Below the pieces are notes generated by a model that saw only the letters and a list, made by a program, of their open reading frames with translations, was not told the origin of the DNA and did no database searches. Position numbers and translations under genes: made by a program. A stretch of DNA of 64,000 nt from Macrostomum lignano (taxonomy: Eukaryota), in the NCBI GenBank assembly GCA_002269645.1, contig NIVC01000365.1, forward strand, positions 558,001 through 622,000, in the 5' to 3' direction. Of this stretch, positions 5,300 through 23,890 are shown one piece after another; the stretch's first letter is position 1, and each line of letters begins with the position of its first letter.

Positions 5300-6610
5300 T
5301 CAACAGTTGAGGCCGTAGCCCAGGCCGCCCGGAATGGCGAACGGGAACGGATTGGCCGACAGCAGCTGCGTCAGCGCGTCTGTCCCGCTGGCCGCGGCGG
5401 CGACGCCACCGGTCGAGACCGTAGCGGGGCCGGTCAGGCCGGCGCCGGCGCCAGTCAGAGAGGCCGCGCTGCTGACGGCGCCAGGCGACTGCAGCTGCTG
5501 CTGCTGAGCGCGCAAGCGCAGAAAGTCGAAGATCGGCGGCACCTCGGCGCTGGCGGGCAGGTTCAGCGCCGCCTTGATGGCCTGATCGTCCAGCGGCGGG
5601 CAGGCAGCCAGCACGGCCGGGTCCGGCGACAAGGAGCGGCCCGTCATGGCGGCGATGAGGTGCAGCTGCTGAGTGAGCAGCCAATAGCGACGCCGCTGCT
5701 CACCAAGCAGTCCCTGCCCAGCTGGCGCGGCAGCAGCGGAGGCCGCAGAAGTCGACTGCGAGGAGCTGGGCACAGACAGGCGGCGGCCGGAGCTGCGGAC
5801 CGGCCGAGGCGACAGCGCGGCGATGGCAGCGGCGGCGCTGTGCTGATGGTAGTGCTGGTGACCGGCGGCCGCAGTGTGGGCGGCGGCGGCAGCGGCAGCG
5901 GCGGCAGCGGCGGCGGCGGCGGAGGGGCTAGTGTCGAACTCGCCTGCCAGCTGCGGGGGTGGCGGCGGGAAGGAATGACGCATTCGGCTCGGCGTAGTGT
6001 GCCGGCGCTGCTGGATGGCGCTCGGGCTGCCGCGGCTGACGAGCTCCGATGGCGGGGAGGCGGCGGCAGCAGCGGCAGCGGCTTTCGAGACGATGGGAGA
6101 CGTGACGGTGCGCGCTGGCACGGCCTCCTCATCGCTCGGCGTCTGCGTGGCGACTGTGGCAGTGCGTACGGCGCGCGCCTCCTCGGAGCACTTGAGCTCT
6201 TCTAGAAGCCGGATGAGGTCCTCCTCCTCCTTGGCGATGACTTCCTCGTCCTTCGGTGGCAGCGGCGCGGCATCTTTGGCCTCGGGGCCGAGGATCTTCT
6301 TGCGCAGGTAGTTGCGGATGTGCAGCGGCGGGTGGAAGAACATGTCCAGGTTGATCTCGCGCCGCGCTGTCGGGTCCATGTGCTGGCAGGCGCAATCGCC
6401 GTACAGCACGAAGTTCTTGCAGCAGATCACGAGGCCGGCCGGGAACGACTCGTAGAGAAATCGGGGGTGAAAGATGCGAACGCGCTTGGCCGGGTGGGCC
6501 AGCATGCAGTCGCCTTTGCAGCCGCTGTTCTCCAGGAACTCCTGGCACACCGGGTGCATGTAGGGGCCGTGGATGTAGTGGTTAAACACTTCTCTTGGCA
6601 GGTAGGCCAT
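5300..6610 (-). CDS. Intronless CCCH zinc-finger protein, divergent muscleblind(MBNL)-like, ~436 aa
   Basis: ATG at 6610 (MAYLPREVF). VCQEFLENSGCKGDCMLAHP...GLVICCKNF...FFHPPLHIRNYL parallels MBNL CREF..CKFAHP..GRVIAC..YLHPPPHLK. Followed by poly-Ala, low-complexity C-terminus. Confidence 0.6.
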   Translation of the reverse strand: MAYLPREVFNHYIHGPYMHPVCQEFLENSGCKGDCMLAHPAKRVRIFHPRFLYESFPAGLVICCKNFVLYGDCACQHMDPTARREINLDMFFHPPLHIRNYLRKKILGPEAKDAAPLPPKDEEVIAKEEEDLIRLLEELKCSEEARAVRTATVATQTPSDEEAVPARTVTSPIVSKAAAAAAAASPPSELVSRGSPSAIQQRRHTTPSRMRHSFPPPPPQLAGEFDTSPSAAAAAAAAAAAAAAHTAAAGHQHYHQHSAAAAIAALSPRPVRSSGRRLSVPSSSQSTSAASAAAAPAGQGLLGEQRRRYWLLTQQLHLIAAMTGRSLSPDPAVLAACPPLDDQAIKAALNLPASAEVPPIFDFLRLRAQQQQLQSPGAVSSAASLTGAGAGLTGPATVSTGGVAAAASGTDALTQLLSANPFPFAIPGGLGYGLNC

Positions 6611-7627
6611 CTTGGACTGCGGACTCTGCTGTCTTGTCGGATCTCTTCTGCCTGATAAAACTACACCTCTCTCTGACAATTGAGGGTTGGGACCAGGTCT
6701 TTAAACTTGTGTTAGCCCACCTCAGCACCAACCCCTCCCCAGCCCTTCTCAGGCGGCGAAGGATTAGGCCGCAGCCAATCAGAACGAAGCTCATTAATAA
6801 TAAAGTGCCAACGCCGGGGGGCAAAACAAGCTCTCACACTGACTAAACCAACCGAATCTAAAAATAGAAACGTTTGGACAGAGGGGGTAGAAGGGCGATG
6901 ACTCAGCTTAGTCAGCAGGGGTTGACTATAATTTGCCTTATCTGGCCAATCGATTGATTCAGCGACTGTACGCACCGATTTTTCTTACCCCCCTTGCGAC
7001 CCCACTCCACTCCCCCAGGCCCGCTTCTTCTCCTTTCACTTCAGTGGCAGCGATGATAAGGGTTGAATACACATGGCCAATAATTCACTTTAGTGCACAC
7101 ACCCAGACCCAGCCTACACATTTAATCAATGTGGTGCAATTAATTCAGCTCAATATTTCACAATAAAACCGCGACTCGGTAAATAATTCTGAAATCAATT
7201 TATTTCTGGAAGCTGGATAGATCGCAACTTAACGTTTTATAAGCAAAAATTAACTTGCATAGAACCTAAAAAAATCGGAAGCATTGCAATATAATCATCA
7301 TAAACGCACCACCGCACATTACAGAAATATGATTCCAAGCAGAAGAAGCATTAAAGCGAACAGAAATAAATAGCAGCCATATAACAAGCAGCCTACAAAG
7401 ACATTTCTAAAAATGACTTTTAATTTCTCATCATTTACCATACATAAAAAAGACTTCATAGGTACTGAATAGATTTACTTAAAAGCAGGCATCATAAGTG
7501 AAAACAAATACGAATTTGAGATTCTTATAGATGAAAGGGAAAATATATTTATTCAATACAAAAGCTGCTAAGCTGGGTACCAAAACAGTGCGAAATGCGA
7601 CTGTCAGATTCAAGGAATCAGGAATAC

Positions 7628-9138
7628 TCAGGTAATGTAGGCCCTGACAGCTCCCAGGATGCGGGATCCGCACTGCGGACAGGCCGAACTCGAGCTCAGG
7701 CAGCCGCGGCACAGCAAGAAGTGCGCGCACGGCAGGGTCACGTGATCCCGGGTGCGCTCTCGGCACAGCAGGCACTTATCACTCTGAGCTGCGACCTCTG
7801 CGTCCTCCTCCACGGAGATCTGCGAATGAAAGCCCGGGTGACCGGACTTCTCTGCAGCCTGCGCTGACTGGGGCTTGGAACTTCTGGCTGCTTGGGCTAG
7901 GGATTGAAGGGCTTCTGATTTCTGCTGCTCCAGTGCGGGTCTCTGCTGCTCCAGTGCGGGTCTCTGCTGCTCCAGTGCGGGTCTCTGCTGCTCCAGTGCG
8001 GGTCTCTGCTGCTCCAGTGCGGGTCTCTGCTGCTCCAGTGCGGGTCTCTGCTGCTCCAGTGCGGGTCTCTGCTGCTCCAGTGCGGGTCTCTGCTGCTCCA
8101 GTGCGGGTCTCTGCTGCTCCAGTGCGGGTCTCTGCTGCTCCAGTGCGGGTCTCTGCTGCTCCATTATGGATCTCTGCTGCTCCAGTGCGGGTCTCTGCTG
8201 CTCCAGTGCGGGTCTCTGCTGCTCCAGTGCGGGTCTCTGCTGCTCCAGTGCGGGTCTCTGCTGCTCCAGTGCGGGTCTCTGCTGCTCCAGTGCGGGTCTC
8301 TGCTGCTCCAGTGCGGGTCTCTGCTGCTCCAGTGCGGGTCTCTGCTGCCGCTCCCCTGACGCTCCCGACTCGTTCAGCGTTGCGCAGTCGCTCAGCACGG
8401 CCTCCACGTCGATCACGTGACCCCAGTCGGGCTGCAGCTCCTCGAACTCGCGGATCATCTCGATGAGGTCGCCCGGCCTGCAGGCCAGCTGGCCGCCCCG
8501 AGTCATGAAGTGCCGGCAGGCGCAGTACAGCACGCTGCTCCTGGCGAAGCCGAACGACTCGACCAGACCGAGCATCGATCTGCGCTCGAGCAGGTCGCTG
8601 CTCAGCTTGGCGAGCGCGCGTCTCAGCTTGGCGGAGGTGGCGACGACCCGGTCGTGTCGCTCGCTCAGCATTCCGTGAGCAACCTTGAGCAGCGTGAGCA
8701 GCTCGCACTGCTCGCCTCCCAGCTGCTCGTGAAGCCGCAGCGGCTCGTCGGTCGGGCCGCCCGGCCGCACCGGAAGCCGGCAGCCGCAGTGGAAGCAGCG
8801 AACTGCTCCGGTGGCCGCCTCATCAGCCGGCAGGAAGAGGCCAGCATCCGCCCAGCGATACCGGGCCGCCTCATCAGCCAGGAAGGGCGCCGCCGACCGA
8901 CTGAGCGACCGCAGCCGCGTCGCGTACTCGGCGAAAGCGGGGAACCTGGCGGCGGTGACGCAGAACAGCAGGCTGCCTGGAAGGAAAATTGTGTGCTGTT
9001 AGTTCCATCGCAGACTTTTGATATTGCAGCAATATTTTTAATGAACACACCACTGAGCAAGTTACCTCTCGTGTAGAAGCTTGCGCTGTCTGCAAGTGTC
9101 AAGCAGAGCTGCTTGCTGAATGCGGAGCTGCCTTCCAT
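7628..9138 (-). CDS. IAP-like copy A: BIR-UBA-(EQQRPAL)20-RING; exons 9138-9066 and 8976-7628
   Basis: BIR (RLRSL..WADAG..VRCFHCG..H..C), UBA-like (FGF..V..G..LI), C-terminal IAP-type RING CLLC..LPCAH..CRGC..CPQC..RAYIT*. The 89-nt phase-1 intron restores the frame; TATATAA at ~9226-9232. Confidence 0.85.
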
Positions 9139-9615
9139 TCCGCAGTTTGTGCAGTGGCGTTTGGTTTCGCTCGTTTCTGCAAAATCTGCAGTGTTTGCAG
9201 AGGGGCTGTTTGGATACAAGCAACTTATATATGCGGGCTAACATCTATATTTACTTAGTGCTTGGCTAAAAATAGCCCCACCCAAGTGCTTGGACTCTCC
9301 GATCGCAAGCACGGGGGCTTCCCGTGTAATTTGCTTGCAGGCCGAAAATAGTCCGAATTGCAACTTCCTCATTCTGCAGTACGAGTTGCTGGTCATGTAG
9401 AACCCAACTGACTGAGTACAACATGTGCACAAATAGCCAGCTAGAGCCTCAACAAAAGGAACTTGAAGTTCGCAATCATTGACGTAATCTTTTCATTTTT
9501 TAGGTACACTAAATTAGCGATTTTCGATTTTCGATTTCCATTATTTTGAAGTACGAGCTGAAACCTATTTTAAGCCATTGAATTGTAGGAACAATGAGCT
9601 GTGTCATGCATCAGG

Positions 9616-10215
9616 GAATGGATTGCTAATCTAGCCTATCACGGGTGCAGGAATAGAATGGATTGCTAATCTAGCCTATCATAGGTGCAGGAATAGAATG
9701 GATTGCTAATCTAGCCTATCATGGGTGCAGGAATAGAATGGATTGCTAATCTAGCCTATCACGGGTGCAGGAATAGAATGGATTGCTAATCTAGCCTATC
9801 ATTGATGCAGGAATAGAATGGATTGCTAATCTAGCCTATCATGGATGCAGGAATAGAATGGATTGCTAATCTAGCCTATCACGGGTGCAGGAATAGAATG
9901 GATTGCTAATCTAGCCTATCACGGGTGCAGGAATAGAATGGATTGCTAATCTAGCCTATCATGGATGCAGGAATAGAATGGATTGCTAATCTAGCCTATC
10001 ACGGATGCAGGAATAGAATGGATTGCTAATCTAGCCTATCACGGGTGCAGGAATAGAATGGATTGCTAATCTAGCCTATCACGGGTGCAGGAATAGAATG
10101 GATTGCTAATCTAGCCTATCATGGATGCAGGAATAGAATGGATTGCTAATCTAGCCTATCACGGGTGCAGGAATAGAATGGATTGCTAATCTAGCCTATC
10201 ACGGGTGCAGGAATG
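9616..10215. repeat. 40-bp minisatellite
   Basis: ATGGATTGCTAATCTAGCCTATCACGGGTGCAGGAATAGA x ~15. Confidence 0.95.
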
Positions 10216-11040
10216 AAATAGTTTGACTTGTTAAAAGATTCACTCAATTCTGGTTTGCACCTTCACCAGACAAGACAAAAACCTGTGCTATCACAATGTC
10301 TGTACACTAATTTTCTTAGCTATATGCGAGCATGCATCATTCGTGCGAATTAAAACCATCTTTGATGGCGATGTCAACAAGCTTTGACAGGCATCAGAGA
10401 CTAAGGGCAGAACCCCGTCAATTTTACAAGTTTTGCGGCACAATGCCCGTATCGGGGCTGGTCGCGAGCCCAGGTCCCTCCTGCTTAGCAACCATTCAAT
10501 GGAGTAGAATGAGAGGTCTCTAGCTGACTGGCTCAGGACATTCGCCGCCAGTCCTGGAACCCAAGTTAAGCAGAGTTGGCCACGGTTAGTACGCTGCTAC
10601 ATAGACTTTTTGCGTCACCCCCTGAAGGCAGACATGCGTGAGTTGAGCTCCAGCTCACCAGCTGAGCTGTGGTGGCGCGAGAGTTCGAACCCCACACGAC
10701 ATAAATCGGAGCTAAGATAGTCCAAAGCATTGTGTCTTTGAAATAAATCTTTGCACGCGATTCCAACAACAGAGACGGCAAAATTCAATCAGTTTTTAAA
10801 AACCCATTAGGCAGTAATGCAATGCTGGGAAGTTGTAAAATACGAGTATATTACGAGGTATTATGGCTATTGAGCTGAGTAAAATCTCTAGTTAAAGCTA
10901 AGAGACATTCGTACTTTAGCCCTGGATTAAGTGGAAATGCCGATCAAACAAGTCATTGAAGTTAATTCATTGGACAGTAAAGTACACCCCACAGCTGCAG
11001 TACTGAGCGCAACGGAATAAAAACAGGGCAGCAACGCCAT

Positions 11041-12212
11041 TCAGGCGATAAACGCCCTCAGAGATGCCAGGATGCGGCCACCGCACTGTGGACAGTCTGT
11101 TCTAGAGCTGACGCAGCCGTGGCACAGCAGGAAGTGTGCGCATGGCAGGGTCACGTGATCCCGGGTGCGCTCTCGGCACAGCAAACACTTCTCTGAGCAG
11201 CCGCCGAGCTCGTTGGGCTTCAGCTGATCAGCGTCGGGAGAAACTGACGGCTGCCGAGCAACACCAACTAGTGAGCTTCCACCGACTGTGGCTGCCCGGC
11301 ACATCGCCACCGCCCCCTGCTGCTCCAGTGCGGGTCTCTGCTGCTCCAGTGCGGGTCTCTGCTGCTCCAGTGCGGGTCTCTGCTGCTCCAGTGCGGGTCT
11401 CTGCTGACGCTCCCCTGACGCTCCCGACTCGTTCAGCGTCGCGCAGTCGCTCAGCACGGCCTCCACGTCGATCACGTGACCCCAGTCGGGCTGCAGCTCC
11501 TCGAACTCGCAGATCATCTCGATGAGGTCGCCCGGCCTGCAGGCCAGCTGGCCGCCCCGAGTCATGAAGTGCCGGCAGGCGCAGTACAGCACGCTGCTCC
11601 TGGCGAAGCCGAACGACTCGACCAGACCGAGCATCGATCTGCGCTCGAGCAGGTCGCTGCTCAGCTTGGCGAGCGCGCGTCTCAGCTTGGCGGAGGTGGC
11701 GACGACCCGGTCGTGTCGCTCGCTCAGCATTCCGTGAGCAACCTTGAGCAGCGTGAGCAGCTCGCACTGCTCGCCTCCCAGCTGCTCGTGAAGCCGCAGC
11801 GGCTCGTCGGTCGGGCCGCCCGGCCGCACCGGAAGCCGGCAGCCGCAGTGGAAGCAGCGAACTGCTCCGGTGGCCGCCTCATCAGCCGGCAGGAAGAGGC
11901 CAGCATCCGCCCAGCGACAACGGGCCGCCTCATCAGCCAGGAAGGGCGCCGCCGACCGACTGAGCGACCGCAGCCGCGTCGCGTACTCGGCGAAAGCGGG
12001 GAACCTGGCGGCGGTGACGCAGAACAGCAGGCTGCCTGGAAGGTCGGTGAGGGAGCAGTGGTTGAGCATTCTCAGCCTATTGACAGGAAAATCATAGGGC
12101 AAGTCAGCCAGCAGTGCAGAGAGGTCTCACCCCGCGCATATTCAGAGTTCCGAGTTCCGAGCTGGCGCAAATTTTGCGCAGTCCGCTGGCCGAAGACGCC
12201 ATTGCGCTGCAT
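11041..12212 (-). CDS. IAP-like copy B: BIR-UBA-(EQQRPAL)4-RING; exons 12212-12131 and 12035-11041
   Basis: Same core as A, own linker and RING tail (..LRAFIA*). 95-nt phase-1 intron (GTGAGA..TTCCAG); TATAAG ~75 nt upstream of the ATG. Confidence 0.85.
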
Positions 12213-12922
12213 CCACAGCCTGGCACTGACACAAGCTTCTGCTGCTGCTGGCCACTCTGTGCTCTGTGCAAGGCTTGGCAGCTTATAACCGCTGCTTGCA
12301 AACCGGTTTTGGTTCCAAGTTAAGCATTTGTAGATAACTTTGCCAAGAGACGAAAGTATATTCGGGGATCTCTCACGTACCCCGTAGCCAGTTCTTGCAG
12401 TGGAGTGGAAATTTCTATTTTTAGCTCTGATTCTCAGTCGGGTTTGAATGCCAGTGTACATTGGATGTACATTTAGAGTGCGCGCTCAGTTTGAAAGCGG
12501 TTTCTGTGAAGCAGCGCAACGCCCTCTAAAAGTAATTTACTTTGAATGCAATTGCTTCATTGCCCTTCAAATATATATTTAAAATTTATGGATATGAAAA
12601 TGCCGTAAATATGCTTTGTAAAATAATCTAACAGATATAAGAGAATACCATTGATTATTCAAAATTAACATTTAGTATTTCACTAACTATTTAGCCCCCC
12701 CCCTTTGGGGGCCTTAAAAATGACACCAAATTGCCATGAATCAAAACTTTCATCAAGAAAGTTTCTTTCATCAACCCAAAACCCTTTCTCAATCAGCAAA
12801 TAGTGCTTATCCTTTCAAGCACAAACTCTTAGTGCATATTGTCACTGGCCGGGGCATATTCTGGTCTACAGCAGGAGCTCACGGCCTTATACCTCTCTTT
12901 ATTAGCCTAACTCAAAGAATCC

Positions 12923-13345
12923 CCCAGACAGCAAGCATCCCCCAGACAGCAAGCATCAGCAAGCATCCCCCAGACAGCAAGCATCCCCCAGACAGCAAGC
13001 ATCAGCAAGCATCCCCCAGACAGCAAGCATCAGCAAGCATCCCCCAGACAGCAAGCATCAGCAAGCATCCCCCAGACAGCAAGCATCCCCCAGACAGCAA
13101 GCATCAGCAAGCATCCCCCAGACAGCAAGCATCAGCAAGCATCCCCAGACAGCAAGCATCAGCAAGCATCCCCCAGACAGCAAGCATCAGCAAGCATCCC
13201 CCAGACAGCAAGCATCAGCAAGCATCCCCCAGACAGCAAGCATCAGCAAGCATCCCCCAGACAGCAAGCATCAGCAAGCATCCCCCAGACAGCAAGCATC
13301 AGCAAGCATCCCCCAGACAGCAAGCGTCCCCCAGACAGCAAGCAT
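12923..13345. repeat. Minisatellite of CAGACAGCAAGCAT/CAGCAAGCATCCCC units
   Basis: Tandem units abutting the transposon left TIR; a short inverted relative lies at ~20845-20905. Confidence 0.9.
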
Positions 13346-13350
13346 ATGCT

Positions 13351-16300
13351 GGGCACTGATATCGAGGAAAAAATTGCCACAATACGGCAGCTATGTACCA
13401 TTAAACTACTGCCTTTCTGTAGTTTGGAAAGCCCACTCATTAAAGTTCATGTGCCTATCTTTGCTGTGTATGGCACTATATGTTTCGGTAAACTTTAAAA
13501 GAAAATATTTTATTGTTCTAATAGAATTTTTGCTAATCAAATGAAAATTATGAATAGACCACAAAGGACTGTGGGAGTAAATATTGCCCCATATCTGCTT
13601 GAGCAATAAAACGCTGCACCACAGGTACCAGTAGCTTATGCCTTCTAATTGCAGTCATAAAAAGGAATTTATCAATAGTAATAACACAGTAGTATCTTAT
13701 CTATAATTGCTTTGTAATATTTCTGCCAGGTGCGTTAACTTGGTTATCATACTGCTCAATTTACTTATAAAGGTTTGATCTAGTTCTATCTTATCTAAAA
13801 CAAGCGAGTGCCTGAACTGAAAGAGCTGTTTGCATAGCTTGTACTGTCTACAATGCCAACGACAAAAAAAACTCATAACGAGAACAGGAAAAGTTTGTGC
13901 CTGCTCTGCTTGAGACGAGCTTCTGTGCTGATTTCTTCTTGCTCTAATTTCGAATCCGTGGCAGCCGACTTGTTCCAGGACTACGAGGCAGTGCGGCACT
14001 TTCTACCTGAAGGAGTCTGCCAGGGCTGCAGGCGCGTTTTATCGTCACTAAGAAGTCTGACGCCTCGTGCTCTGCCACCGCGACCAGATTACGAGAAGAT
14101 AATAGCCGATATGAAGAGTCTGCCTCCAGCCACCAGAAGCAGACCGGATTGCAACTGCCAACTGTGCGAAATGGCTCGAGGCAATCACCACAAAGGCAGC
14201 GATCCAAAGACGCCTTACACAACAGGTCCTGCTCGAGCCCCACCTGGTCGACCACGCGAAAGATCCCCAGCGCCAGCTGAAGGAGCAACGGCTGTGCTTT
14301 CCTGCTCATACTGTCCTTCTCCAGTTGGGCGTGGCAAACAGCACAAATGCAACTCGACAGCCAAGGTGACTAACATCGAGCAAACAGTCAGCCCAAGGAC
14401 AAGGGAGATGCTGGCCAGCAACTGCATTGCCGAAAAGACGGGTGGGTCGACGGCGGATTCGAATTCGATCACTCTGGCCAGACATCGAGGCGGCCATCCG
14501 ATTCGAGTTGCTGTGCATGTTGCTCAAAACAGCAGTGCGAGCTTTCCTCCAACGAGGACGGACACTATGATGCACTTGAAAACAACTCTGAATCTGAGCA
14601 ACAATCAAGTGCTACAGGCTGCTCAAGTGCTTCGTGCTGGTGCGAGCTCATCTCGTGCAGTCGAGTCAAACTTGAAGAAAATTTTGGTACAGTAAAATCG
14701 AGCATTGGAGGATTACTTCGACAACCAGAATCTCCACTTCTCGGAGCTGACCTCGACTGCCGCAACAGCCGACACTATTTGCCGCCCGACTGTTGTCTGC
14801 AACGACTCGGTCAAACTCATTGCACATGTTGCTCAGCAACGCAGTTTCAATGATTTTCACTGTCTGCTGGGTCTCGATGGTGGCGGCGGATTTTTTAAAG
14901 TTTGCGTTTCGATAATTGGCTCTAACGCAAAACCCGAAATCGGAACTCGAGGAGCCAACAGCAGGAAATTCCGTGACATGGGTGTCAAGAAGATCCTGTT
15001 GCTTGCGATCGTCAACGATGTTCCTGAGACTTACGGAAATATTCAGGCTCTGCTCGAGGCGATCGCTGTCAACGAACTTCAAATCCCAGTCACTGCAGAT
15101 ATGAAAGTTGCAAACATTATCTGCGGACTGCAACCTCATTCCTGTACACATATGTGCCCCTATTGCGAAGCTCTGGCTCCTCTTACAGAAAATGGTGTGC
15201 CAAGAACTCTTGGGAGAATTCGGCAGTTTGCTCAGCAGTTTCAAGCAGCTGGCCAAGTTCGTGCAAAGGCAAAGAACTTTAAAAACTGTGTCAACATGCC
15301 ACTGCTACCAGGCGATGATGACAAAGAAGTTTTGATGCTTCTGCCGCCACCTGAGCTGCACCTGCTCCTTGGAGTCAGCAACCGACTGCTGGACAAGCTC
15401 AACGAAGCTTGGGGTGCGAATCGCGCGTTCGAGTGGGCTCATCAGCATGGCATTATTCGAGCTGATTACAGAGGCGGCATGATGGAAGGAAACGCCTGCC
15501 GCCAGCTGCTCCGCAAATCACCGCAGCTTCACGCTGATCTGCCTCCACCATTACAGCCGTACGGGGCGTGTCTGATGGCGTTCGATCGGCTGGTCAGCAG
15601 CGCCTTTGGAACCGAATTGGCGGCAGACTTTGAAGAGGCAATTGAGAATTTTCGCCTGGCCTACATGAGCTTAAGCTTGCCTGTCACCCCAAAAGTTCAC
15701 GTTGTCTTTTGCCATATTGGAGAGTTCTGCCGGCGGACAGAGCAAGCGCTTGGCAGCTGCAGCGAGCAAGCAGTGGAGAGTGTTCACTCTGATTTTGCCC
15801 AAACGTGGTCACGGTACAGCCTGCCAGCGCACCATGCTGAGTTTGGCCAAAATCTTTTGCGCGCCGTGGTTGCTTACAACAGCCACCACATTTAATCCCG
15901 GTAACTCGGTTTTCTGCTTTAAAAGAAATGGCAGTGGTTGTTAGTTAGTCTCACAGTAAAGTAGTATTCAAAGGACCCTATAAATTTAAAATACTAAACT
16001 TTTTGCAAGCTCCCGTACTGTCGAAAGCTTTCATACTTTTGCTACTTTATATGCTAATACGAGCGTACCTTGCAATATTATTGCAGAAATGCATGTAGTT
16101 CTGGTTCATATTTGAGGTACTTGCTACACAAAAAGAATATAGTTATTTCGAAATTTTTCTATAAAACCCATGCTGTTTCCGAGTATTTAAATGTAAACAA
16201 TTTGTAATGTTAGAAATCGTAAAATTATTTAACTTACTAACTCACAAGCTAGTTAACAAGTAAAACGAGCAATAATACTACACAAACATTAACCTAAATA

Positions 16301-16534
16301 AACTTATTGTAATCTTGTACTCTTTTTGTACAAGTATACATTGAGTCTGCCACTTGCTAAGAATTTCTGCTTGTCTTATTAACGAGAGCAATTAACGAGA
16401 GCAATTGTACACAGATTGTACACAAAGATAGGCACATGAATTTTAATGAGTGGGCTTTCTGAACTACAGAAAGGCAGTAGTTTAATGGTACATAGGTGCC
16501 GCCTTGTGGCAATTTTTCCCCAATATCAGTGCCC
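13351..16534 (+). mobile_element. Chapaev-like (CMC/RAG1-Transib-related) DNA transposon, ~3.2 kb
   Basis: Imperfect ~113-bp TIRs at 13351-13463 and 16423-16534 (GGGCACTGATAT..., about 9 differences). Flanks ATGCT/ATGCC resemble a TSD. Transposase inside. Confidence 0.8.
13853..15895 (+). pseudogene. Transposase, ~680 codons, interrupted by one in-frame TAA at 14693-14695
   Basis: The 280-aa and 396-aa ORFs share one frame. N-terminal H-x7-C-x2-C-x32-P-x3-C-x2-C (Chapa-like); core GLDGGG / TADMK / CPYC / PELH / H-x4-H / SEQAVES. Confidence 0.8.
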
Positions 16535-17005
16535 ATGCCCAGCCTAACCTTTGGTAAGTCAGTCCCTTACTGTCTAAAATACTTAGATTAGCTTTTTTGA
16601 CTTAAAAAATGTATTTATTTTTAACTGACTGTTTATTAAAAATATTCTAGTTATCGATAATTTTCAGCTTCAAGAACAGTTGGAAGCCAAGAGAAGGCAT
16701 GAAGGTCACGCGAACATGGCACTAACATATAATAGCAAAACTTATCTCGGATTCACCCACAGCGGCTAAATATGAAACCAGAAACCCCAAAGGCCACTTG
16801 AGTGCAGCACTGACGTAGGCGTACGTTAATTCATTACGTTGTGCATCAGACACAACCAGTGAGCCATTACTCACATGCTAAATATAGACTGTAATGTACA
16901 TGGCCTGTCCACGCCAATAGAACACTATAAAAGCACTGCTAGATGTAGGGCTAGCATGGACCAACCAAACAGGCCGCATTCGCAGCACCCACTGCCAGTC
17001 CTGAC

Positions 17006-18429
17006 ATGCCGGCATTCAGCAAAGTCACCGAGGACAAAATACACTCGGCCAGATCGCCCTACAGACTGGGTAAGCAGAGCTGTCCGCTCTCTTTTACTAC
17101 TGAAATTTACTCTGCTGTGATGTTAAAAAATTGCTCAATCACTGCTCCCTCACCGACCTTCCAGGCAGCCTGCTGTTCTGCGTCACCGCCGCCAGGTTCC
17201 CCGCCTTCGCCGAGTACGCGACGCGGCTGCGGTCGCTCAGTCGGTCGGCGGCGCCCTTCCTGGCTGATGAGGCGGCCCGGTGTCGCTGGGCGGATGTTGG
17301 CCTCTTCCTGCCGGCTGATGAGGCGGCCACCGGAGCAGTTCGCTGCTTCCACTGCGGCTGCCGGCTTCCGGTGCGGCCGGGCGGCCCGACCGACGAGCCG
17401 CTGCGGCTTCACGAGCAGCTGGGAGGCGAGCAGTGCGAGCTGCTCACGCTGCTCAAGGTTGCTCACGGAATGCTGAGCGAGCGACACGACCGGGTCGTCG
17501 CCACCTCCGCCAAGCTGAGACGCGCGCTCGCCAAGCTGAGCAGCGACCTGCTCGAGCGCAGATCGATGCTCGGTCTGGTCGAGTCGTTCGGCTTCGCCAG
17601 GAGCAGCGTGCTGTACTGCGCCTGCCGGCACTTCATGACTCGGGGCGGCCAGCTGGCCTGCAGGCCGGGCGACCTCATCGAGATGATCCGCGAGTTCGAG
17701 GAGCTGCAGCCCGACTGGGGTCACGTGATCGACGTCGAGGCCGTGCTGAGCGACTGCGCAACGCTGAACGAGTCGGGAGCGTCAGGGGAGCGGCAGCAGA
17801 GACCCGCACTGGAGCAGCAGAGACCCCCACTGGAGCAGCAGAGACCCGCACTGGAGCAGCAGAGACCCGCACTGGAGCAGCAGAGACCCGCACTGGAGCA
17901 GCAGAGACCCGTACTGGAGCAGCAGAGACCCGCACTGGAGCAGCAGAGACCCGCACTGGAGCAGCAGAGACCCGCACTGGAGCAGCAGAGACCCGCACTG
18001 GAGCAGCAGAGACCCGCACTGGAGCAGCAGAGACCCGCACTGGAGCAGCAGAGACCCGCACTGGAGCAGCAGAGACCCGCACTGGAGCAGCAGAGACCCG
18101 CACTGGAGCAGCAGAGACCCATAATGGAGCAGCAGAAATCAGAAGCCCTTCAATCCCGAGCCCAAGCAGCCAGAAGTTCCAAGCCCCAGTCAGCGCAGGC
18201 TGCAGAGAAGTCCGGTCACCCGGGCTTTCATTCGCAGATCTCCGTGGAGGAGGACGCAGAGTTCGCAGCTCAGAGTGATAAGTGCCTGCTGTGCCGAGAG
18301 CGCACCCGGGATCACGTGACCCTGCCGTGCGCGCACTTCTTGCTGTGCCGCGGCTGCCTGAGCTCGAGTTCCGCCTGTCCGCAGTGCGGATCCCGCATCC
18401 TGGGAGCCGTCAGGGCCTACATTACCTGA
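17006..18429 (+). CDS. IAP-like copy C: BIR-UBA-(EQQRPAL)16-RING; exons 17006-17069 and 17165-18429
   Basis: TATAAAA at 16926; GTAAGC donor at 17070; 95-nt phase-1 intron; tail nearly identical to copy A. Confidence 0.87.
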
Positions 18430-19119
18430 GCCATTTTGCTGCGACTTTGAAACGCCTTTGTTGGTTCCGGCAGCGCATTTTCTAGGATTTCGCGAAGAAT
18501 TTTCGACTCAACTTTCATGGACGACTCAGGTTGGACTCAAAATAGCAGTTCTTGCTTGATTTTTCGACTTAAATTTTGATCTACCGGCTGGCTTGAAGTT
18601 TGACTGTCGGTCTTTTGCCACAATTGAGTTCTTGGTTGTTTATCTCGCCTTTCTCTCCGCCTTCAAAGTCTTCAATGCTCAATTGTTTTACTATAATGCG
18701 GATAAAGAATAACTGCGTTTTATATTTAAACTTATATTTAAGCTTTTTATTATGTTTTATAGATTAGTTAGCTTCGTCAAGACTCAAGACGTTAATTGGT
18801 TTGTTAAAATGCGCTCTATGAAATATTTTGTACTGTTATTTATTATCAACAATAAATAAACCGGTCGTATGAACGAAATTCCAAGTGACTTCTCGAGGGC
18901 TTTTCTCAGAGTTTTTGGTGCCCAAAATTTGGTGGGATTTCATTGTCGGCTATGCCGTTTAGGAGTATTTAGGGCAATGACCTGTGGGCCTATTTCGAGC
19001 TCTCAATGAGCTTTTATGCTCCTTATGATACCGAAGTATTGTCCTAAAAATATGAGCAGTCTGGGTTCAGCCGCTATCAAGCATGAGGGAGAAACAAATG
19101 TTGTGCCTTCGCCTGCAGC

Positions 19120-20220
19120 TCTGCAGTCTCTGACCCTCATCTCCGCTCCCCTTCTCTCCCTCCCTGCAGCCTCTGAACCTCATCTCCGCTCCTCTTCCCT
19201 CCCTCCCTGCAGCCTCTGAACCTCATCTCCGCTCCCCTTCTCTCCCTCCCTGCAGCCTCTGAACCTCATCTCCGCTCCTCTTCCCTCCCTCCCTGCAGCC
19301 TCTGAACCTCATCTCCGCTCCCCTTCTCTCCCTCCCTGCAGTCTCTGACCCTCATCTCCGCTCCTCTTCCCTCCCTCCCTGCAGCCTCTGAACCTCATCT
19401 CCGCTCCCCTTCTCTCCCTCCCTGCAGCCTCTGACCCTCATCTCCGCTCCCCTTCCCTCCCTCCCTGCAGCCTCTGAACCTCATCTCCGCTCCTCTTCCC
19501 TCCCTCCCTGCAGCCTCTGAACCTCATCTCCGCTCCCCTTCCCTCCCTCCCTGCAGCCTCTGACCCTCATCTCCGCTCCCCTTCCCTCCCTCCCTGCAGC
19601 CTCTGAAACTCATCTCCGCTCCCCTTCCCTCCCTCCCTGCAGCCTCTGAACCTCATCTCCGCTCCTCTTCCCTCCCTCCCTGCAGCCTCTGACCCTCATC
19701 TCCGCTCCTCTTCCCTCCCTCCCTGCAGCCTCTGAACCTCATCTCCGCTCCCCTTCCCTCCCTCCCTGCAGCCTCTGACCCTCATCTCCGCTCCCCTTCC
19801 CTCCCTCCCTGCAGCCTCTGAAACTCATCTCCGCTCCCCTTCCCTCCCTCCCTGCAGCCTCTGAACCTCATCTCCGCTCCCCTTCTCTCCCTCCCTGCAG
19901 CCTCTGACCCTCATCTCCGCTCCCCTTCCCTCCCTCCCTGCAGCCTCTGAAACTCATCTCCGCTCCTCTTCCCTCCCTCCCTGCAGCCTCTGAAACTCAT
20001 CTCCGCTCCTCTTCCCTCCCTCCCTGCAGCCTCTGAACCTCATCTCCGCTCCCCTTCTCTCCCTCCCTGCAGCCTCTGAACCTCATCTCCGCTCCCCTTC
20101 TCTCCCTCCCTGCAGCCTCTGAACCTCATCTCCGCTCCCCTTCTCTCCCTCCCTGCAGCCTCTGAACCTCATCTCCGCTCCTCTTCCCTCCCTCCCTGCA
20201 GCCTCTGAACCTCATCTCCC
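19120..20220. repeat. 43-bp pyrimidine-rich minisatellite
   Basis: CTGCAGCCTCTGAACCTCATCTCCGCTCCCCTTCTCTCCCTCC x ~25. Confidence 0.95.
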
Positions 20221-21127
20221 TTTCACTTAGTTTTGAATAAATTCTGCACACAATCATCATCAAAAAACAATATACTAAATCTCTTAGATCTGTCTGACCG
20301 GTATTTCAGTATTCAGCCTGAATGCCTGAACCGAATTTTTTCAAACTTGCTGCATTGAATTGGAAATTCTTGTGAGATTGTGTGGGTGTAATTGCATTAA
20401 AAAATTAGAATGGGAAGATGGTTAAATATTCGAAAAACTGTATTTTCCCCATCTAATTAGTGTATTTTTTCGCAGTGAGGGCTCAATATGTCTTTGGCCA
20501 TAGACTAAACTTCAGCTTCTTGAGCTGATGCTCCGAGCCATAAATAATTAAATACGAGTATTCGAAAACATGCTTTTTGCATAAGGGAGAGATATCAGCC
20601 AGTGCACTTTAAAAGTATTGAAGTATTGCGCAACTGTGTATAGGCCTCACTGCTATATATCACTCACTGTGTATATCACTGCTATGTATTTGACTGCAGT
20701 GCCGAAGCATACATGGCTGATGCTAAAAATGGTCTGTCGGTGTGTGCCCCGGTGGGTGCTTGCTACGTCTGTTGGATGCTTGCTGTTTGGCGCCACTATA
20801 TAGTATATGCAAATGATAGAAAAATGCTCAGCGGCTGCGTGCTGTTTGGGAAATGCTTGCTGTCTTGGGGATGCTTGCTGTCTGAGGAATGCTTGCTGTC
20901 TGCGGGCCTGTCTGCAATGTGCAATTTCATGTTCATGAATTTTTGAAACAAATGCAACCCATTGAGTTCGCGGGTACGTAGCGGAGTGCAGCGAACATTG
21001 AACCCTTAAATCTAGACTTAGTGTAGACTGAAGTCCAAAGTACTGAGAGATAAACATTGCGCCCAGAGTTCGCATAAGTCTATTAATACAAAGTACTGAC
21101 GCCAGACACCAGGTAGATCAGAGCCGT

Positions 21128-21740
21128 AAGCTAATGACACTGCAGGTAGATCAACTGTAGGCTAATGACACTGCAGGTAGATCAACTGTAGGCTAATGAC
21201 ACTGCAGGTAGATCAACTGTAGGCTAATGACACTGCAGGTAGATCAACTGTAGGCTAATGACACTGCAGGTAGATCAACTGTAGGCTAATGGCACTGCAG
21301 GTAGATCAGCTGTAAGCTAATGGCACTGCAGGTAGATCAGCTGTAGGCTAATGACACTGCAGGTAGATCAACTGTAGGCTAATGGCACTGCAGGTAGATC
21401 AGCTGTAGGCTAATGACACTGCAGGTAGATCAACTGTAGGCTAATGACACTGCAGGTAGATCAACTGTAGGCTAATGGCACTGCAGGTAGATCAGCTGTA
21501 AGCTAATGGCACTGCAGGTAGATCAGCTGTAGGCTAATGACACTGCAGGTAGATCAGCTGTAAGCTAATGGCACTGCAGGTAGATCAGCTGTAGGCTAAT
21601 GACACTGCAGGTAGATCAGCTGTAGGCTAATGACACTGCAGGTAGATCAGCTGTAGGCTAATGACACTGCAGGTAGATCAGCTGTAGGCTAATGACACTG
21701 CAGGTAGATCAGCTGTAGGCTAATGACACTGCAGGTAGAT
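21128..21740. repeat. 31-bp minisatellite
   Basis: GCTAATGACACTGCAGGTAGATCAACTGTAG x ~20. Confidence 0.95.
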
Positions 21741-22015
21741 GCTCGGTCTTGTCGAGACGTTCAGCTTCGTCAGAGCTATTGAAAAACTGAAAAAATAATC
21801 TATAAAGCGATAGCCAAACTTGACGCACTTGATAGCAACCGAAAGTGACCCAGCAATCCAAAGGTCACAGTGCAGTGCATTCTTGCCCAAAAATAACTGT
21901 GAACCAGAGGACTGCAGCAAAATACTTTATTAGCCTAGCCCAAGATTTATTCTAAAACCTGTTTAGCTCTCGAGCGAAGCGCTGCATCTGCTGGAACTGA
22001 GCCTACCGATCCCCG

Positions 22016-23311
22016 ATGCACAGCTGCCGGCTACTTGGAGCCAAGGTTGCCGCGAGACTGCAGCCCGGAACAGCCTACGTGAGCAGTAAGTGAGCAAGCA
22101 AAGACCCCCCAATCTTGGCGGAGTTGGCCTAAACCTGCCGAGCTGATTGACCTCCTTCCAGGCAGCCTGCTGTTCTGCGTCACCGCCGCCAGGTTCCCCG
22201 CTTTCGCCGAGTACGCGACGCGGCTGCGGTCGCTCAGTCGGTCGGCGGCGCCCTTCCTGGCTGATGAGGCGGCCCGGTGTCGCTGGGCGGATGCTGGCCT
22301 CTTCCTGCCGGCTGATGAGGCGGCCACCGGAGCAGTTCGCTGCTTCCACTGCGGCTGCCGGCTTCCGGTGCGGCCGGCGGCCCGACCGACGAGCCGCTGC
22401 GGCTTCACGAGCAGCTGGGAGGCGAGCAGTGCGAGCTGCTCACGCTGCTCAAGGTTGCTCACGGAATGCTGAGCGAGCGACACGACCGGGTCGTCGCCAC
22501 CTCCGCCAAGCTGAGACGCGCGCTCGCCAAGCTGAGCAGCGACCTGCTCGAGCGCAGATCGATGCTCGGTCTGGTCGAGTCGTTCGGCTTCGCCAGGAGC
22601 AGCGTGCTGTACTGCGCCTGCCGGCACTTCATGACTCGGGGCGGCCAGCTGGCCTGCAGGCCGGGCGACCTCATCGAGATGATCCGCGAGTTCGAGGAGC
22701 TGCAGCCCGACTGGGGTCACGTGATCGACGTGGAGGCCGTGCTGAGCGACTGCGCGACGCAGAACGAGTCGGGAGCGTCAGGGGAAAGGCGGCAGAGACC
22801 CGCACTGGAGCAGCAGAGACCCGCACTGGAGCAGCAGAGACCCGCACTGGAGCAGCAGAGACCCGCACTGGAGCAGCAGAGACCCGTACTGGAGCAGCAG
22901 AGACCCGCACTGGAGCAGCAGAGACCCGCACTGGAGCAGCAGAGACCCGCACTGGAACAGCAGAGACCCGCACTGGAGCAGCAGAGACCCGCACTGGAGC
23001 AGCAGAGACCCGCACTGGAGCAGCAGAGACCCGCACTGGAGCAGCAGAGACCCACACTGGAGCAGCAGAGACCCGCACTGGAGCAGCAGAGACCCACAAT
23101 GGAACAGCAGAGACAGTCCGCATCAGCCTGTTCCATCAGCAAGAATTCAGTTGCATCAGACAGGTGCACGGGTTGCTGGCAAAGTGCCAAGAGCCAGGTA
23201 ACCCTGCCCTGCGCGCACCTGCTGCTGTGTGCTGACTGCCTTCAAGCTCGGTCCCGCTGCCCCAGCTGTGGGGTACGAATCTTGGCCTCCGTTCGGGCCT
23301 ATCTCGTTTAA
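22016..23311 (+). pseudogene. IAP-like copy D: BIR-UBA-(EQQRPAL)15-RING with a 1-nt deletion in the BIR (real or assembly error); exons 22016-22085 and 22162-23311
   Basis: GTAAGT donor, 76-nt phase-1 intron. CGGCCGGCGG at ~22371-22380 vs CGGCCGGGCGG in copies A-C. Own RING CTGC..LPCAH..CADC..CPSC..RAYLV*. Confidence 0.75.
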
Positions 23312-23643
23312 GGCGAGCTCAGTGATTGCCAGCAGCACCTGTGGCCCTTACCCTTCCCATGTCTTTTATGTTTGAACCTAAAAAAATAAGTTTGAAAAGT
23401 CACATCAACAGTCATTGCGATCCTTCTTTTTTCAAGTTGTATTTGTTTGAACATTCACTTGATATTCAAGCGACGAAAACCCCGCCGCAGGCTGACGACG
23501 TTGAGTCTGAAAAATGCGAATTGAGTGGCTGAGCTGACTCGCACTGCTGATCTGATCTGTTGGATTAATATTGCAAGCTTCTCACTAGTTCGAAATAAAA
23601 CTTATTCAGCGATATGCTCGCTTTTTCACGCTTCTGCTTAGCT

Positions 23644-23890
23644 CTCCCTAGCAACCCATCTCCCTAGCAACCCATCTCCCTAGCAACCATCTCCCTAGCA
23701 ACCCATCTCCCTAGCAACCCATCTCCCTAGCAACCCATCTCCCTAGCAACCCATCTCCCTAGCAACCCATCTCCCTAGCAACCCATCTCCCTAGCAACCC
23801 ATCTCCCTAGCAACCCATCTCCCTAGCAACCCATCTCCCTAGCAACCCATCTCCCTAGCAACCCATCTCCCTAGCAACCCATCTCCCTAG
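23644..23890. repeat. 16-bp minisatellite (CCCATCTCCCTAGCAA)
   Basis: ~15 tandem units. Confidence 0.95.

Follow-up and report, generated by a model that had tools for sequence, protein, structure and literature searches.

A cluster of four IAP-like genes in Macrostomum lignano combines a near-identical core with divergent ends, a pattern probably due to interlocus gene conversion

Results

A cluster of four related genes

The window considered here, namely, the whole stretch of DNA that was analyzed, comprises 64 kb of Macrostomum lignano contig NIVC01000365.1 (assembly GCA_002269645.1). NIVC01 is the PacBio-based Mlig_3_7 assembly, for which an RNA-seq-based annotation is available (Wudarski et al., 2017; PMC5730564) and in which 180 Mb of non-repetitive blocks are duplicated at an identity of at least 95%, because the sequenced line has extra chromosomes (PMC5730564). 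Six-frame translation of the window, together with self-BLAST, revealed four homologous genes, termed A-D, that form two inverted pairs inside 16 kb, with A and B lying on the minus strand and C and D on the plus strand. A tblastn search of the 64-kb window did not detect a fifth copy. The predicted products resemble members of the IAP family, and the genes share a near-identical internal segment (the core) embedded in homologous but much older sequence, a mosaic that was probably generated by gene conversion between paralogs. The genes and their parts are as follows:

7628-9138, minus strand: gene A (predicted, 473 amino acids); exon 1, 9138-9066; intron, 9065-8977 (89 nt, donor GAG/GTAACT); exon 2, 8976-7628
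11041-12212, minus strand: gene B (358 amino acids, counted from the first ATG); exon 1, 12212-12131; intron, 12130-12036 (95 nt, donor GGG/GTGAGA); exon 2, 12035-11041
17006-18429, plus strand: gene C (442 amino acids); exon 1, 17006-17069; intron, 17070-17164 (95 nt, donor TGG/GTAAGC); exon 2, 17165-18429
22016-23311, plus strand: gene D (reading frame broken by a 1-nt deletion); exon 1, 22016-22085; intron, 22086-22161 (76 nt, donor GCA/GTAAGT); exon 2, 22162-23311

Each gene thus comprises an ATG-started exon 1 of 21-27 full codons and a split codon, a phase-1 intron and a long exon 2, such that the short first exon, 76-95-nt phase-1 intron and long second exon described in the initial annotation of this DNA were recovered in all four cases. 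The predicted splice of B coincides exactly with that in PAA84649.1, a transcript-based NCBI model, where a gene of 1322 nt and a product of 408 amino acids imply a 95-nt intron. Likewise, the predicted splice of C is exactly that found in the annotated model (Mlig008615g1; SPYRLG/SLLFCV) of C', its counterpart on a second contig, NIVC01000707.1 (L002 and L004), which carries counterparts of all four genes (A'-D'; see below). A and D are not annotated in NIVC01000365.1, with exon 1 of each being a prediction, while counterpart A' is annotated from the acceptor onward only. In M. lignano, splice donors follow the motif GT[G/A]AG and acceptors the motif [T/C]TNCAG (PMC8629364). The donors of B, C and D match the former and the common acceptor TTCCAG matches the latter; the donor of A (GTAAC) is weaker and departs from the species motif.

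The same acceptor may also be spliced leader (SL)-trans-spliced. The annotated A' model begins at L002 13719 and the acceptors in the window (8977, 12036, 17164 and 22161) fit the trans-splice motif. The idea that SL trans-splicing supplies the start codon of the long frame was considered and rejected, since the SL does end in ATG but this ATG would read in the +1 frame. That frame is open for about 104 codons from the SL ATG, and its stop has been lost in A' and B'.

Gene D had been taken as an intact fourth gene in the initial annotation, where a frameshift present in this assembly was overlooked. Specifically, one G is lost between positions 22375 and 22376, converting GGCCGGGCGG to GGCCGGCGG. 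This shifts the reading frame within the zinc motif described below, with a stop predicted after 126 codons. D' on NIVC01000707.1 is intact, as is a D-like UniRef entry. As such, D is either a very recent pseudogene or reflects a homopolymer error of the long-read consensus.

A homogenized core with abrupt edges

Alignment of the four copies revealed a core of approximately 636 bp that opens with the first base of CTTCCAG at the exon 2 acceptor (A, 8983; B, 12042; C, 17158; D, 22155) and closes where an in-frame tandem array of 21-bp units begins. Any two copies in the window differ by only 4-7 substitutions over these 636 nt. The corresponding segments are:

8349-8983, minus strand: core of A (acceptor CTTCCAG, predicted divergent BIR and then helical domain)
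11407-12067, minus strand: core of B (counting 25 extra intron bases common to C alone)
17133-17792, plus strand: core of C (counting 25 extra intron bases common to B alone)
22155-22788, plus strand: core of D (containing the 1-nt deletion)

Upstream of the core, i.e., in exon 1, the intron and the promoter region, identity between paralogs falls to the random level. Indeed, the 200 nt upstream are 44-56% identical between paralogs, values close to those of a shuffled control (42.5%, maximum 50%). The exception is offered by B and C, which alone have 25 more intron bases in common, corresponding to 32 nt with one mismatch. Hence, the near-identical block of some 630 bp that begins at the acceptor, the barely alignable 5' ends and the intron 3' end common to B and C, all proposed in the initial annotation, were each substantiated. 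The independent promoters also proposed at that time are putative, the upstream DNA being unalignable between paralogs.

The tandem array, linkers and RING-encoding tails

The array that bounds the core is in frame and encodes QQRPALE heptads, with the number of units differing between genes. Beyond the array lie a linker and a RING-encoding tail. These features are distributed as follows:

7921-8348, minus strand: QQRPALE array of A (20 units)
11317-11406, minus strand: QQRPALE array of B (4 units), the 3' limit of the homogenized block in B
17793-18136, plus strand: QQRPALE array of C (16 units)
22792-23114, plus strand: QQRPALE array of D (about 15 units), the 3' limit of the homogenized block in D
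7628-7920, minus strand: linker and RING (zf-C3HC4_3) of A, near-identical to C up to one base past TGA
18137-18429, plus strand: linker and RING of C, near-identical to A up to one base past TGA
11044-11196, minus strand: RING of B, with 79% nucleotide identity to A and C (synonymous divergence, dS, about 0.5) and a 40-bp run identical to A
23156-23308, plus strand: RING of D, with 55-57% nucleotide identity to the others (synonymous sites saturated)

The linker and RING of A and C differ at only two amino acid positions, and the two genes become unalignable from one base past the TGA, in agreement with the earlier suggestion that these two copies have this segment in common and that their identity stops at the stop codon. 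By dS, the RINGs of A and C are 0.05 apart, each lies about 0.5 from that of B and comparisons with D are saturated. The linkers of B and D are unrelated. The core, at 4-7 substitutions per 636 nt, is therefore embedded in homologous and much older sequence of the same genes, where RING dS ranges from 0.5 to saturation.

The initial annotation also drew attention to a 40-bp patch shared by the otherwise diverged RINGs of A and B. Such a run does exist (A, 7731-7770; B, 11144-11183) and encodes a stretch where the two proteins are identical. When all sites within the RING were permuted with codon position being kept, a run of this kind was unexpected (P = 0.002), but it was not so when third positions alone were permuted (P = 0.10), making it weak evidence of a separate event. 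As such, the patch is considered a possible, rather than a demonstrated, small conversion tract.

GC content at third codon positions (GC3) is highest in the core (0.87), followed by the RINGs of A and C (0.80-0.82), and is lowest in those of B and D (0.69-0.71), which are unconverted. The DNA flanking the core and RING segments has a GC content of 33-47%.

A second copy of the cluster reveals loss of positional signal in the core

Two proteins of the 90% cluster to which B belongs map to NIVC01000707.1. Collinearity between this contig and the window covers the entire cluster, with D', C', B' and A' retaining the order, orientation and identity edges of the genes in the window. Over long flanks measured in kilobases, the window and NIVC01000707.1 are 96.6-99% identical. 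In the 200 nt upstream, B, C and D match their positional counterparts at 97.5-98.5% of bases and A matches A' at 87.5%, the latter value coming from an ungapped alignment.

The core behaves differently. Over 636 nt, counterparts differ by 3, 5, 5 and 9 substitutions, while paralogs differ by 4-10, such that position leaves no trace in the core and counterparts are no closer to each other than are paralogs. Accordingly, the comparison with a second lineage that the initial annotation had called for showed flanks that follow position in NIVC01000707.1 and a core that does not. Of 20 variable core sites over the eight copies, 15 are private to a single copy and five, at columns 48, 140, 318, 603 and 636, are informative. 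Sharing at the informative sites cuts across position, joining C with B', A' with B', A with C, A' and D', and B with B' and C', whereas D and D' have no derived core sites in common. In the four-gamete test, eight of the ten pairs of informative sites fail, yielding a minimum number of recombination events (Rm) of 3, while only about 0.16 coincidences involving the same base at the same site are expected from independent mutation. Approximately half of the variable core sites are synonymous.

The tails group by type. The RINGs of A, C, A' and C' fall together, B groups with B' and D groups with D'. In the last 300 coding bases of A, A', C and C', there is no fixed difference between A and C. 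One base past the TGA, this switches to perfect identity of A with A' and of C with C'.

The number of array units also differs between the window and its counterpart (A, 20 vs. 7 in A'; B, 4 vs. 7 in B'; C, 16 vs. 14 in C'; D, 15 vs. 10 in D'). The C' array includes three 24-nt units, each with an extra CAG, and the annotated C' mRNA model omits 177 nt of the QQRPALE array.

Other differences between the two contigs were noted. The D' core (L004 about 17362-18000) contains five private G:C to A:T transitions, three of which replace Gly with Asp or Arg; every other copy presents four private core changes at most. These transitions could stem from relaxed constraint, a mutational cluster or consensus error. 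The acceptor of D' also differs by one base. Finally, a 2.5-kb insertion just downstream of A' (L002 14953-17520) has no equivalent at position 7470 of the window.

An IAP-like family apparently restricted to Macrostomum

The C-terminal domain of these proteins is a zf-C3HC4_3 RING (PF13920), which in B, C and D exceeds the gathering score, with E values of 1e-9 to 1e-7; the RING peptide of A is identical to that of C. Assigning the core proved less straightforward. Pfam searches with the core returned neither a BIR (PF00653) nor a UBA domain, even at E<=10, and a phmmer search with the core against PDB gave no match. A word-indexed protein search with the core retrieved the D ORF (open reading frame) of the window only, while HMMER, run exhaustively against 1.84 billion representatives, retrieved eight proteins, all from M. 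lignano. Relatives outside the cluster are 27-41% identical to the cluster proteins. A follow-up profile search did not extend the family to any taxon beyond M. lignano, and literature searches yielded no earlier account of this gene family or of gene conversion in Macrostomum. The family is thus apparently uncharacterized and Macrostomum-restricted.

When a profile built from seven family sequences was compared with PDB, all 60 of the matches listed corresponded to BIR proteins (E = 5e-8 to 9e-4), the best values being obtained with NAIP (5e-8) and survivin (2e-5), and with XIAP, cIAP, BIRC6 and DIAP1 (about 1e-4). Moreover, the predicted zinc ligands C63, C66, H85 and C93 are invariant within the family. 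Because the profile matches only BIR proteins in PDB and because these ligands are invariant, the family can be accepted, at the sequence level, as IAP-like, with a divergent BIR and a RING. This designation carries caveats, namely, ligand spacing, replaced tryptophans and a domain that lies below the Pfam threshold. Thus, the ligands in the window proteins are spaced as C-x2-C-x18-H-x7-C, as opposed to the canonical C-x2-C-x16-H-x6-8-C. Both tryptophans of the NAIP BIR (in GNW and DDPW) align with non-aromatic family residues, the corresponding segments in the window being RLPVRP and DEPL. The aligned tryptophans are residues of the peptide groove in BIRs of the type II class that bind IAP-binding motifs, as in XIAP BIR3. 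An AlphaFold2 model of the BIR-like region is of mediocre confidence (mean predicted local distance difference test score, pLDDT, of 66), and a Foldseek search with this model gave cIAP1 (3t6p; probability 0.85, E = 0.12), survivin and BIRC6, none of which was significant (template modeling score <=0.24). The BIR named in the initial annotation is hence supported as a remote homolog by the family profile but falls below the PF00653 threshold of Pfam.

The region following the BIR-like domain is predicted with confidence as a helical bundle in the AlphaFold2 model (pLDDT 83). The assignment of this region as a UBA domain in the initial annotation was not sustained, given that neither the PDB profile search nor Pfam searches with each family member detected a UBA and that no Foldseek match was significant (E>=4), with the tandem UBA of USP13 (E = 4, probability 0.10) and domain III of RuvA coming out on top. 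The same order of BIR-like domain, helical region and RING is seen in the distant paralogs of 27-41% identity, showing that A-D did not arise by the joining of unrelated parts. Nor do the data favor the earlier proposal that a single fixed sensor is combined with E3 ends that vary, since A and C end in the same E3 module, the reading frame of D is broken in this assembly and the BIR-like domain does not retain the tryptophans aligned from NAIP.

In having a BIR-related N-terminal region and a C-terminal zf-C3HC4_3 RING, the family resembles IAPs such as XIAP, cIAP1/2, DIAP1 and ML-IAP. Unlike these, the Macrostomum family presents x18/x7 spacing, replacements of the NAIP tryptophans and a heptad array without an IAP counterpart. 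As in cIAP and XIAP, where a UBA occupies this position, a predicted helical bundle follows the BIR, here without a significant UBA match.

Neighboring DNA

Several additional features were noted around the four genes. Between the divergent genes B and C, a frame of about 680 codons on the plus strand (13853-15895) is interrupted by a single stop at 14693-14695, yielding ORFs of 280 and 396 amino acids; neither of these long ORFs has a Pfam or PDB match. The segment spanning 13514-15819 is replaced in the second contig by 380 unrelated bases (L002 8778-9158), and the region around this segment is bracketed by a 118-bp inverted repeat of 91.5% identity (13350-13467 and 16420-16535). Segment 13514-15819 is probably a decaying mobile element.

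Every intergenic space contains a long tandem array (9616-10214, 12929-13325, 19121-20219, 21110-21740 and 23643-23890), with periods of 40, 28/56, 43, 31 and 16 bp. The 31-bp array occupies 0.63 kb in the window, whereas its equivalent in the second contig (L002 765-3523) is about 2.7 kb long. A neighboring single-exon gene on the minus strand (5300-6610) is annotated as encoding 436 amino acids with long poly-Ala and poly-Gln runs; the longer 459-amino acid ORF at 5300-6679 has no Pfam match.

Discussion

Interlocus gene conversion as the likely source of the mosaic

The genes described here form a mosaic of segments of different age, in which the core has lost its positional signal and has undergone at least three exchange events. 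The explanation that best accounts for these observations is that A-D are four old paralogs whose core evolves in concert by interlocus (ectopic) gene conversion, a reading assigned a probability of roughly 0.8. The age of the RINGs as reflected in dS, the contrast between flanks and core, an Rm of 3 and tract ends that differ between pairs all bear out the initial proposal that old paralogs have been repeatedly overwritten across inverted copies. Indeed, because the ends of identity vary with the pair considered, lying at the array for all four copies, at the stop codon for A and C and 25 nt into the intron for B and C, several events at the DNA level are indicated.

According to this reading, DNA-level homologous repair would copy one paralog into another, acting on both direct (A-B and C-D) and inverted (A-C and B-C) pairs. 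Tracts would form only where copies are still alike, which for all four genes would be the region between the exon 2 acceptor and the end of the 21-bp array and, for A and C, would continue to the stop codon. Divergence would already be too great for pairing in the intron, in exon 1, in the untranslated regions (UTRs) and, for B and D, in the linker and RING; these parts would therefore keep diverging, thereby sharpening the edges at the coding boundaries. Repair could proceed by a mechanism resembling synthesis-dependent strand annealing. The unstable 21-bp array would be a plausible start point of breaks, given how wildly the number of its units varies between the two contigs. GC-biased conversion may, moreover, be one reason why GC3 is so high in the core, with the fall in GC3 from core to unconverted RINGs being what such a bias would produce.

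Several points weigh against gene conversion as the source of the pattern. Identity reaches both coding edges without the decay expected of tract ends that fall inside homology. Polishing of the PacBio assembly with reads mis-mapped among copies that are 99% identical could create some of the shared variants that fail the four-gamete test, and recurrent mutation is conceivable at one informative site (column 603), where the change is a CpG transition. The two contigs, moreover, may represent homeologs, copies on the extra chromosome or haplotigs. Finally, the analysis is based on assembled sequence from one assembly.

Alternative explanations

Were the identity of the core simply a matter of youth, a segment beginning at the exon 2 acceptor would recently have been pasted non-homologously into or beside other genes. 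The abrupt start of identity at a single point in all copies and its abrupt end at the stop codon in A and C are in keeping with such partial duplication, and a duplication limited to an ORF is known to mimic the picture expected of conversion, a warning raised in PMC3966223. Yet B and D have old, in-frame RINGs homologous to those of A and C (dS of 0.5 to saturated), meaning that the recipients were already family members. Three or four independent pastes would, moreover, have needed to use the same acceptor breakpoint and to keep the frame. Lastly, all four copies and their edges predate the split of the two contigs, yet the core is non-positional and fails the four-gamete test. Recent partial duplication is therefore deemed improbable. 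Purifying selection acting alone, i.e., without any exchange, would find a rationale in the predicted conserved zinc motif and helical domain encoded by the core. However, synonymous sites are identical as well, with GC3-rich codons matching at all but a few positions, while the RING, which is equally constrained, has a dS of 0.5 to saturated. As about half of the core variants are synonymous, selection at the protein level cannot explain the identity, and this explanation was rejected.

The position of the 5' edge at the acceptor in every copy raises the possibility that RNA served as template, with cDNA of spliced or SL-trans-spliced mRNA having repaired other copies. In line with this, the 6-7 intron bases shared by all copies (TTCCAG) correspond to the acceptor motif of the species and so could be held by selection, while the annotated A' model begins one base before exon 2, as would a trimmed trans-spliced transcript. 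At the same time, identity between B and C continues 25 nt into the intron, cDNA would bring with it the 3' UTR, whereas identity between A and C ends one base past the TGA, and the terminal ATG of the SL would open the +1 frame and not the BIR frame. RNA-templated conversion is thus very unlikely. A broader proposal is equally doubtful, namely, that the exon-delimited edges arise from an active, transcript-linked process by which paralogs under different regulation retain one identical BIR-like/helical module; such a process might involve repair templated by RNA or cDNA of mRNAs for which the common acceptor served in splicing or SL trans-splicing, or else breaks that transcription provokes in the 21-bp array. 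Still less credence is given to the near-identity being false and generated by collapse or cross-correction of a repeated core during assembly or polishing. The assembly is indeed PacBio-based and highly redundant, the D frameshift sits in a run of G residues, a typical context for indel errors, and array lengths differ widely between the two contigs. Nonetheless, two separately assembled contigs agree on the four-gene layout and its edges, every copy is marked by private substitutions and an array length of its own, and B, A', B' and C' are backed by transcript-based models. An artefact is hence unlikely to explain the overall mosaic, although it could still affect single shared variants and the D frameshift.

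Comparison with other systems and implications

The "patchwork" chorion genes of silkmoths offer another example of interlocus gene conversion. Conversion limited to coding sequence has been described for clustered paralogs in either orientation in Caenorhabditis elegans, namely, the inverted modules of hsp16 and the col-12/col-13 genes (PMC3966223), and the HMA4 triplicate of Arabidopsis halleri provides a further case (bioRxiv 10.1101/2025.10.29.685298). Like these, the Macrostomum cluster presents near-identical reading frames, unalignable flanks and a mosaic of identity, involves both direct and inverted neighbors and includes paralogs that are as alike as are positional counterparts. In contrast to these systems, homogenization here reaches only part of the reading frame for two copies out of four, the inner edge corresponds to an in-frame 21-bp array and the outer edges lie at a splice acceptor and about one base from the stop codon.

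The cluster thus represents a known process, partial concerted evolution, in a new and uncharacterized gene family and does not reveal a new mechanism. What it does offer is a duplicate of the whole cluster within one assembly, allowing flanks, which are positional, to be contrasted with a core that is not. Because the cores are near-identical, RNA-seq, RNAi or CRISPR designs based on core sequence cannot distinguish the genes, with only exon 1, the UTRs and the tails of B and D being copy-specific. Although of modest general interest, the findings are useful for the design of copy-specific reagents and for the dating of duplicates in M. lignano, where, in a hidden-polyploid genome, paralog ages deduced from coding identity can be badly wrong.

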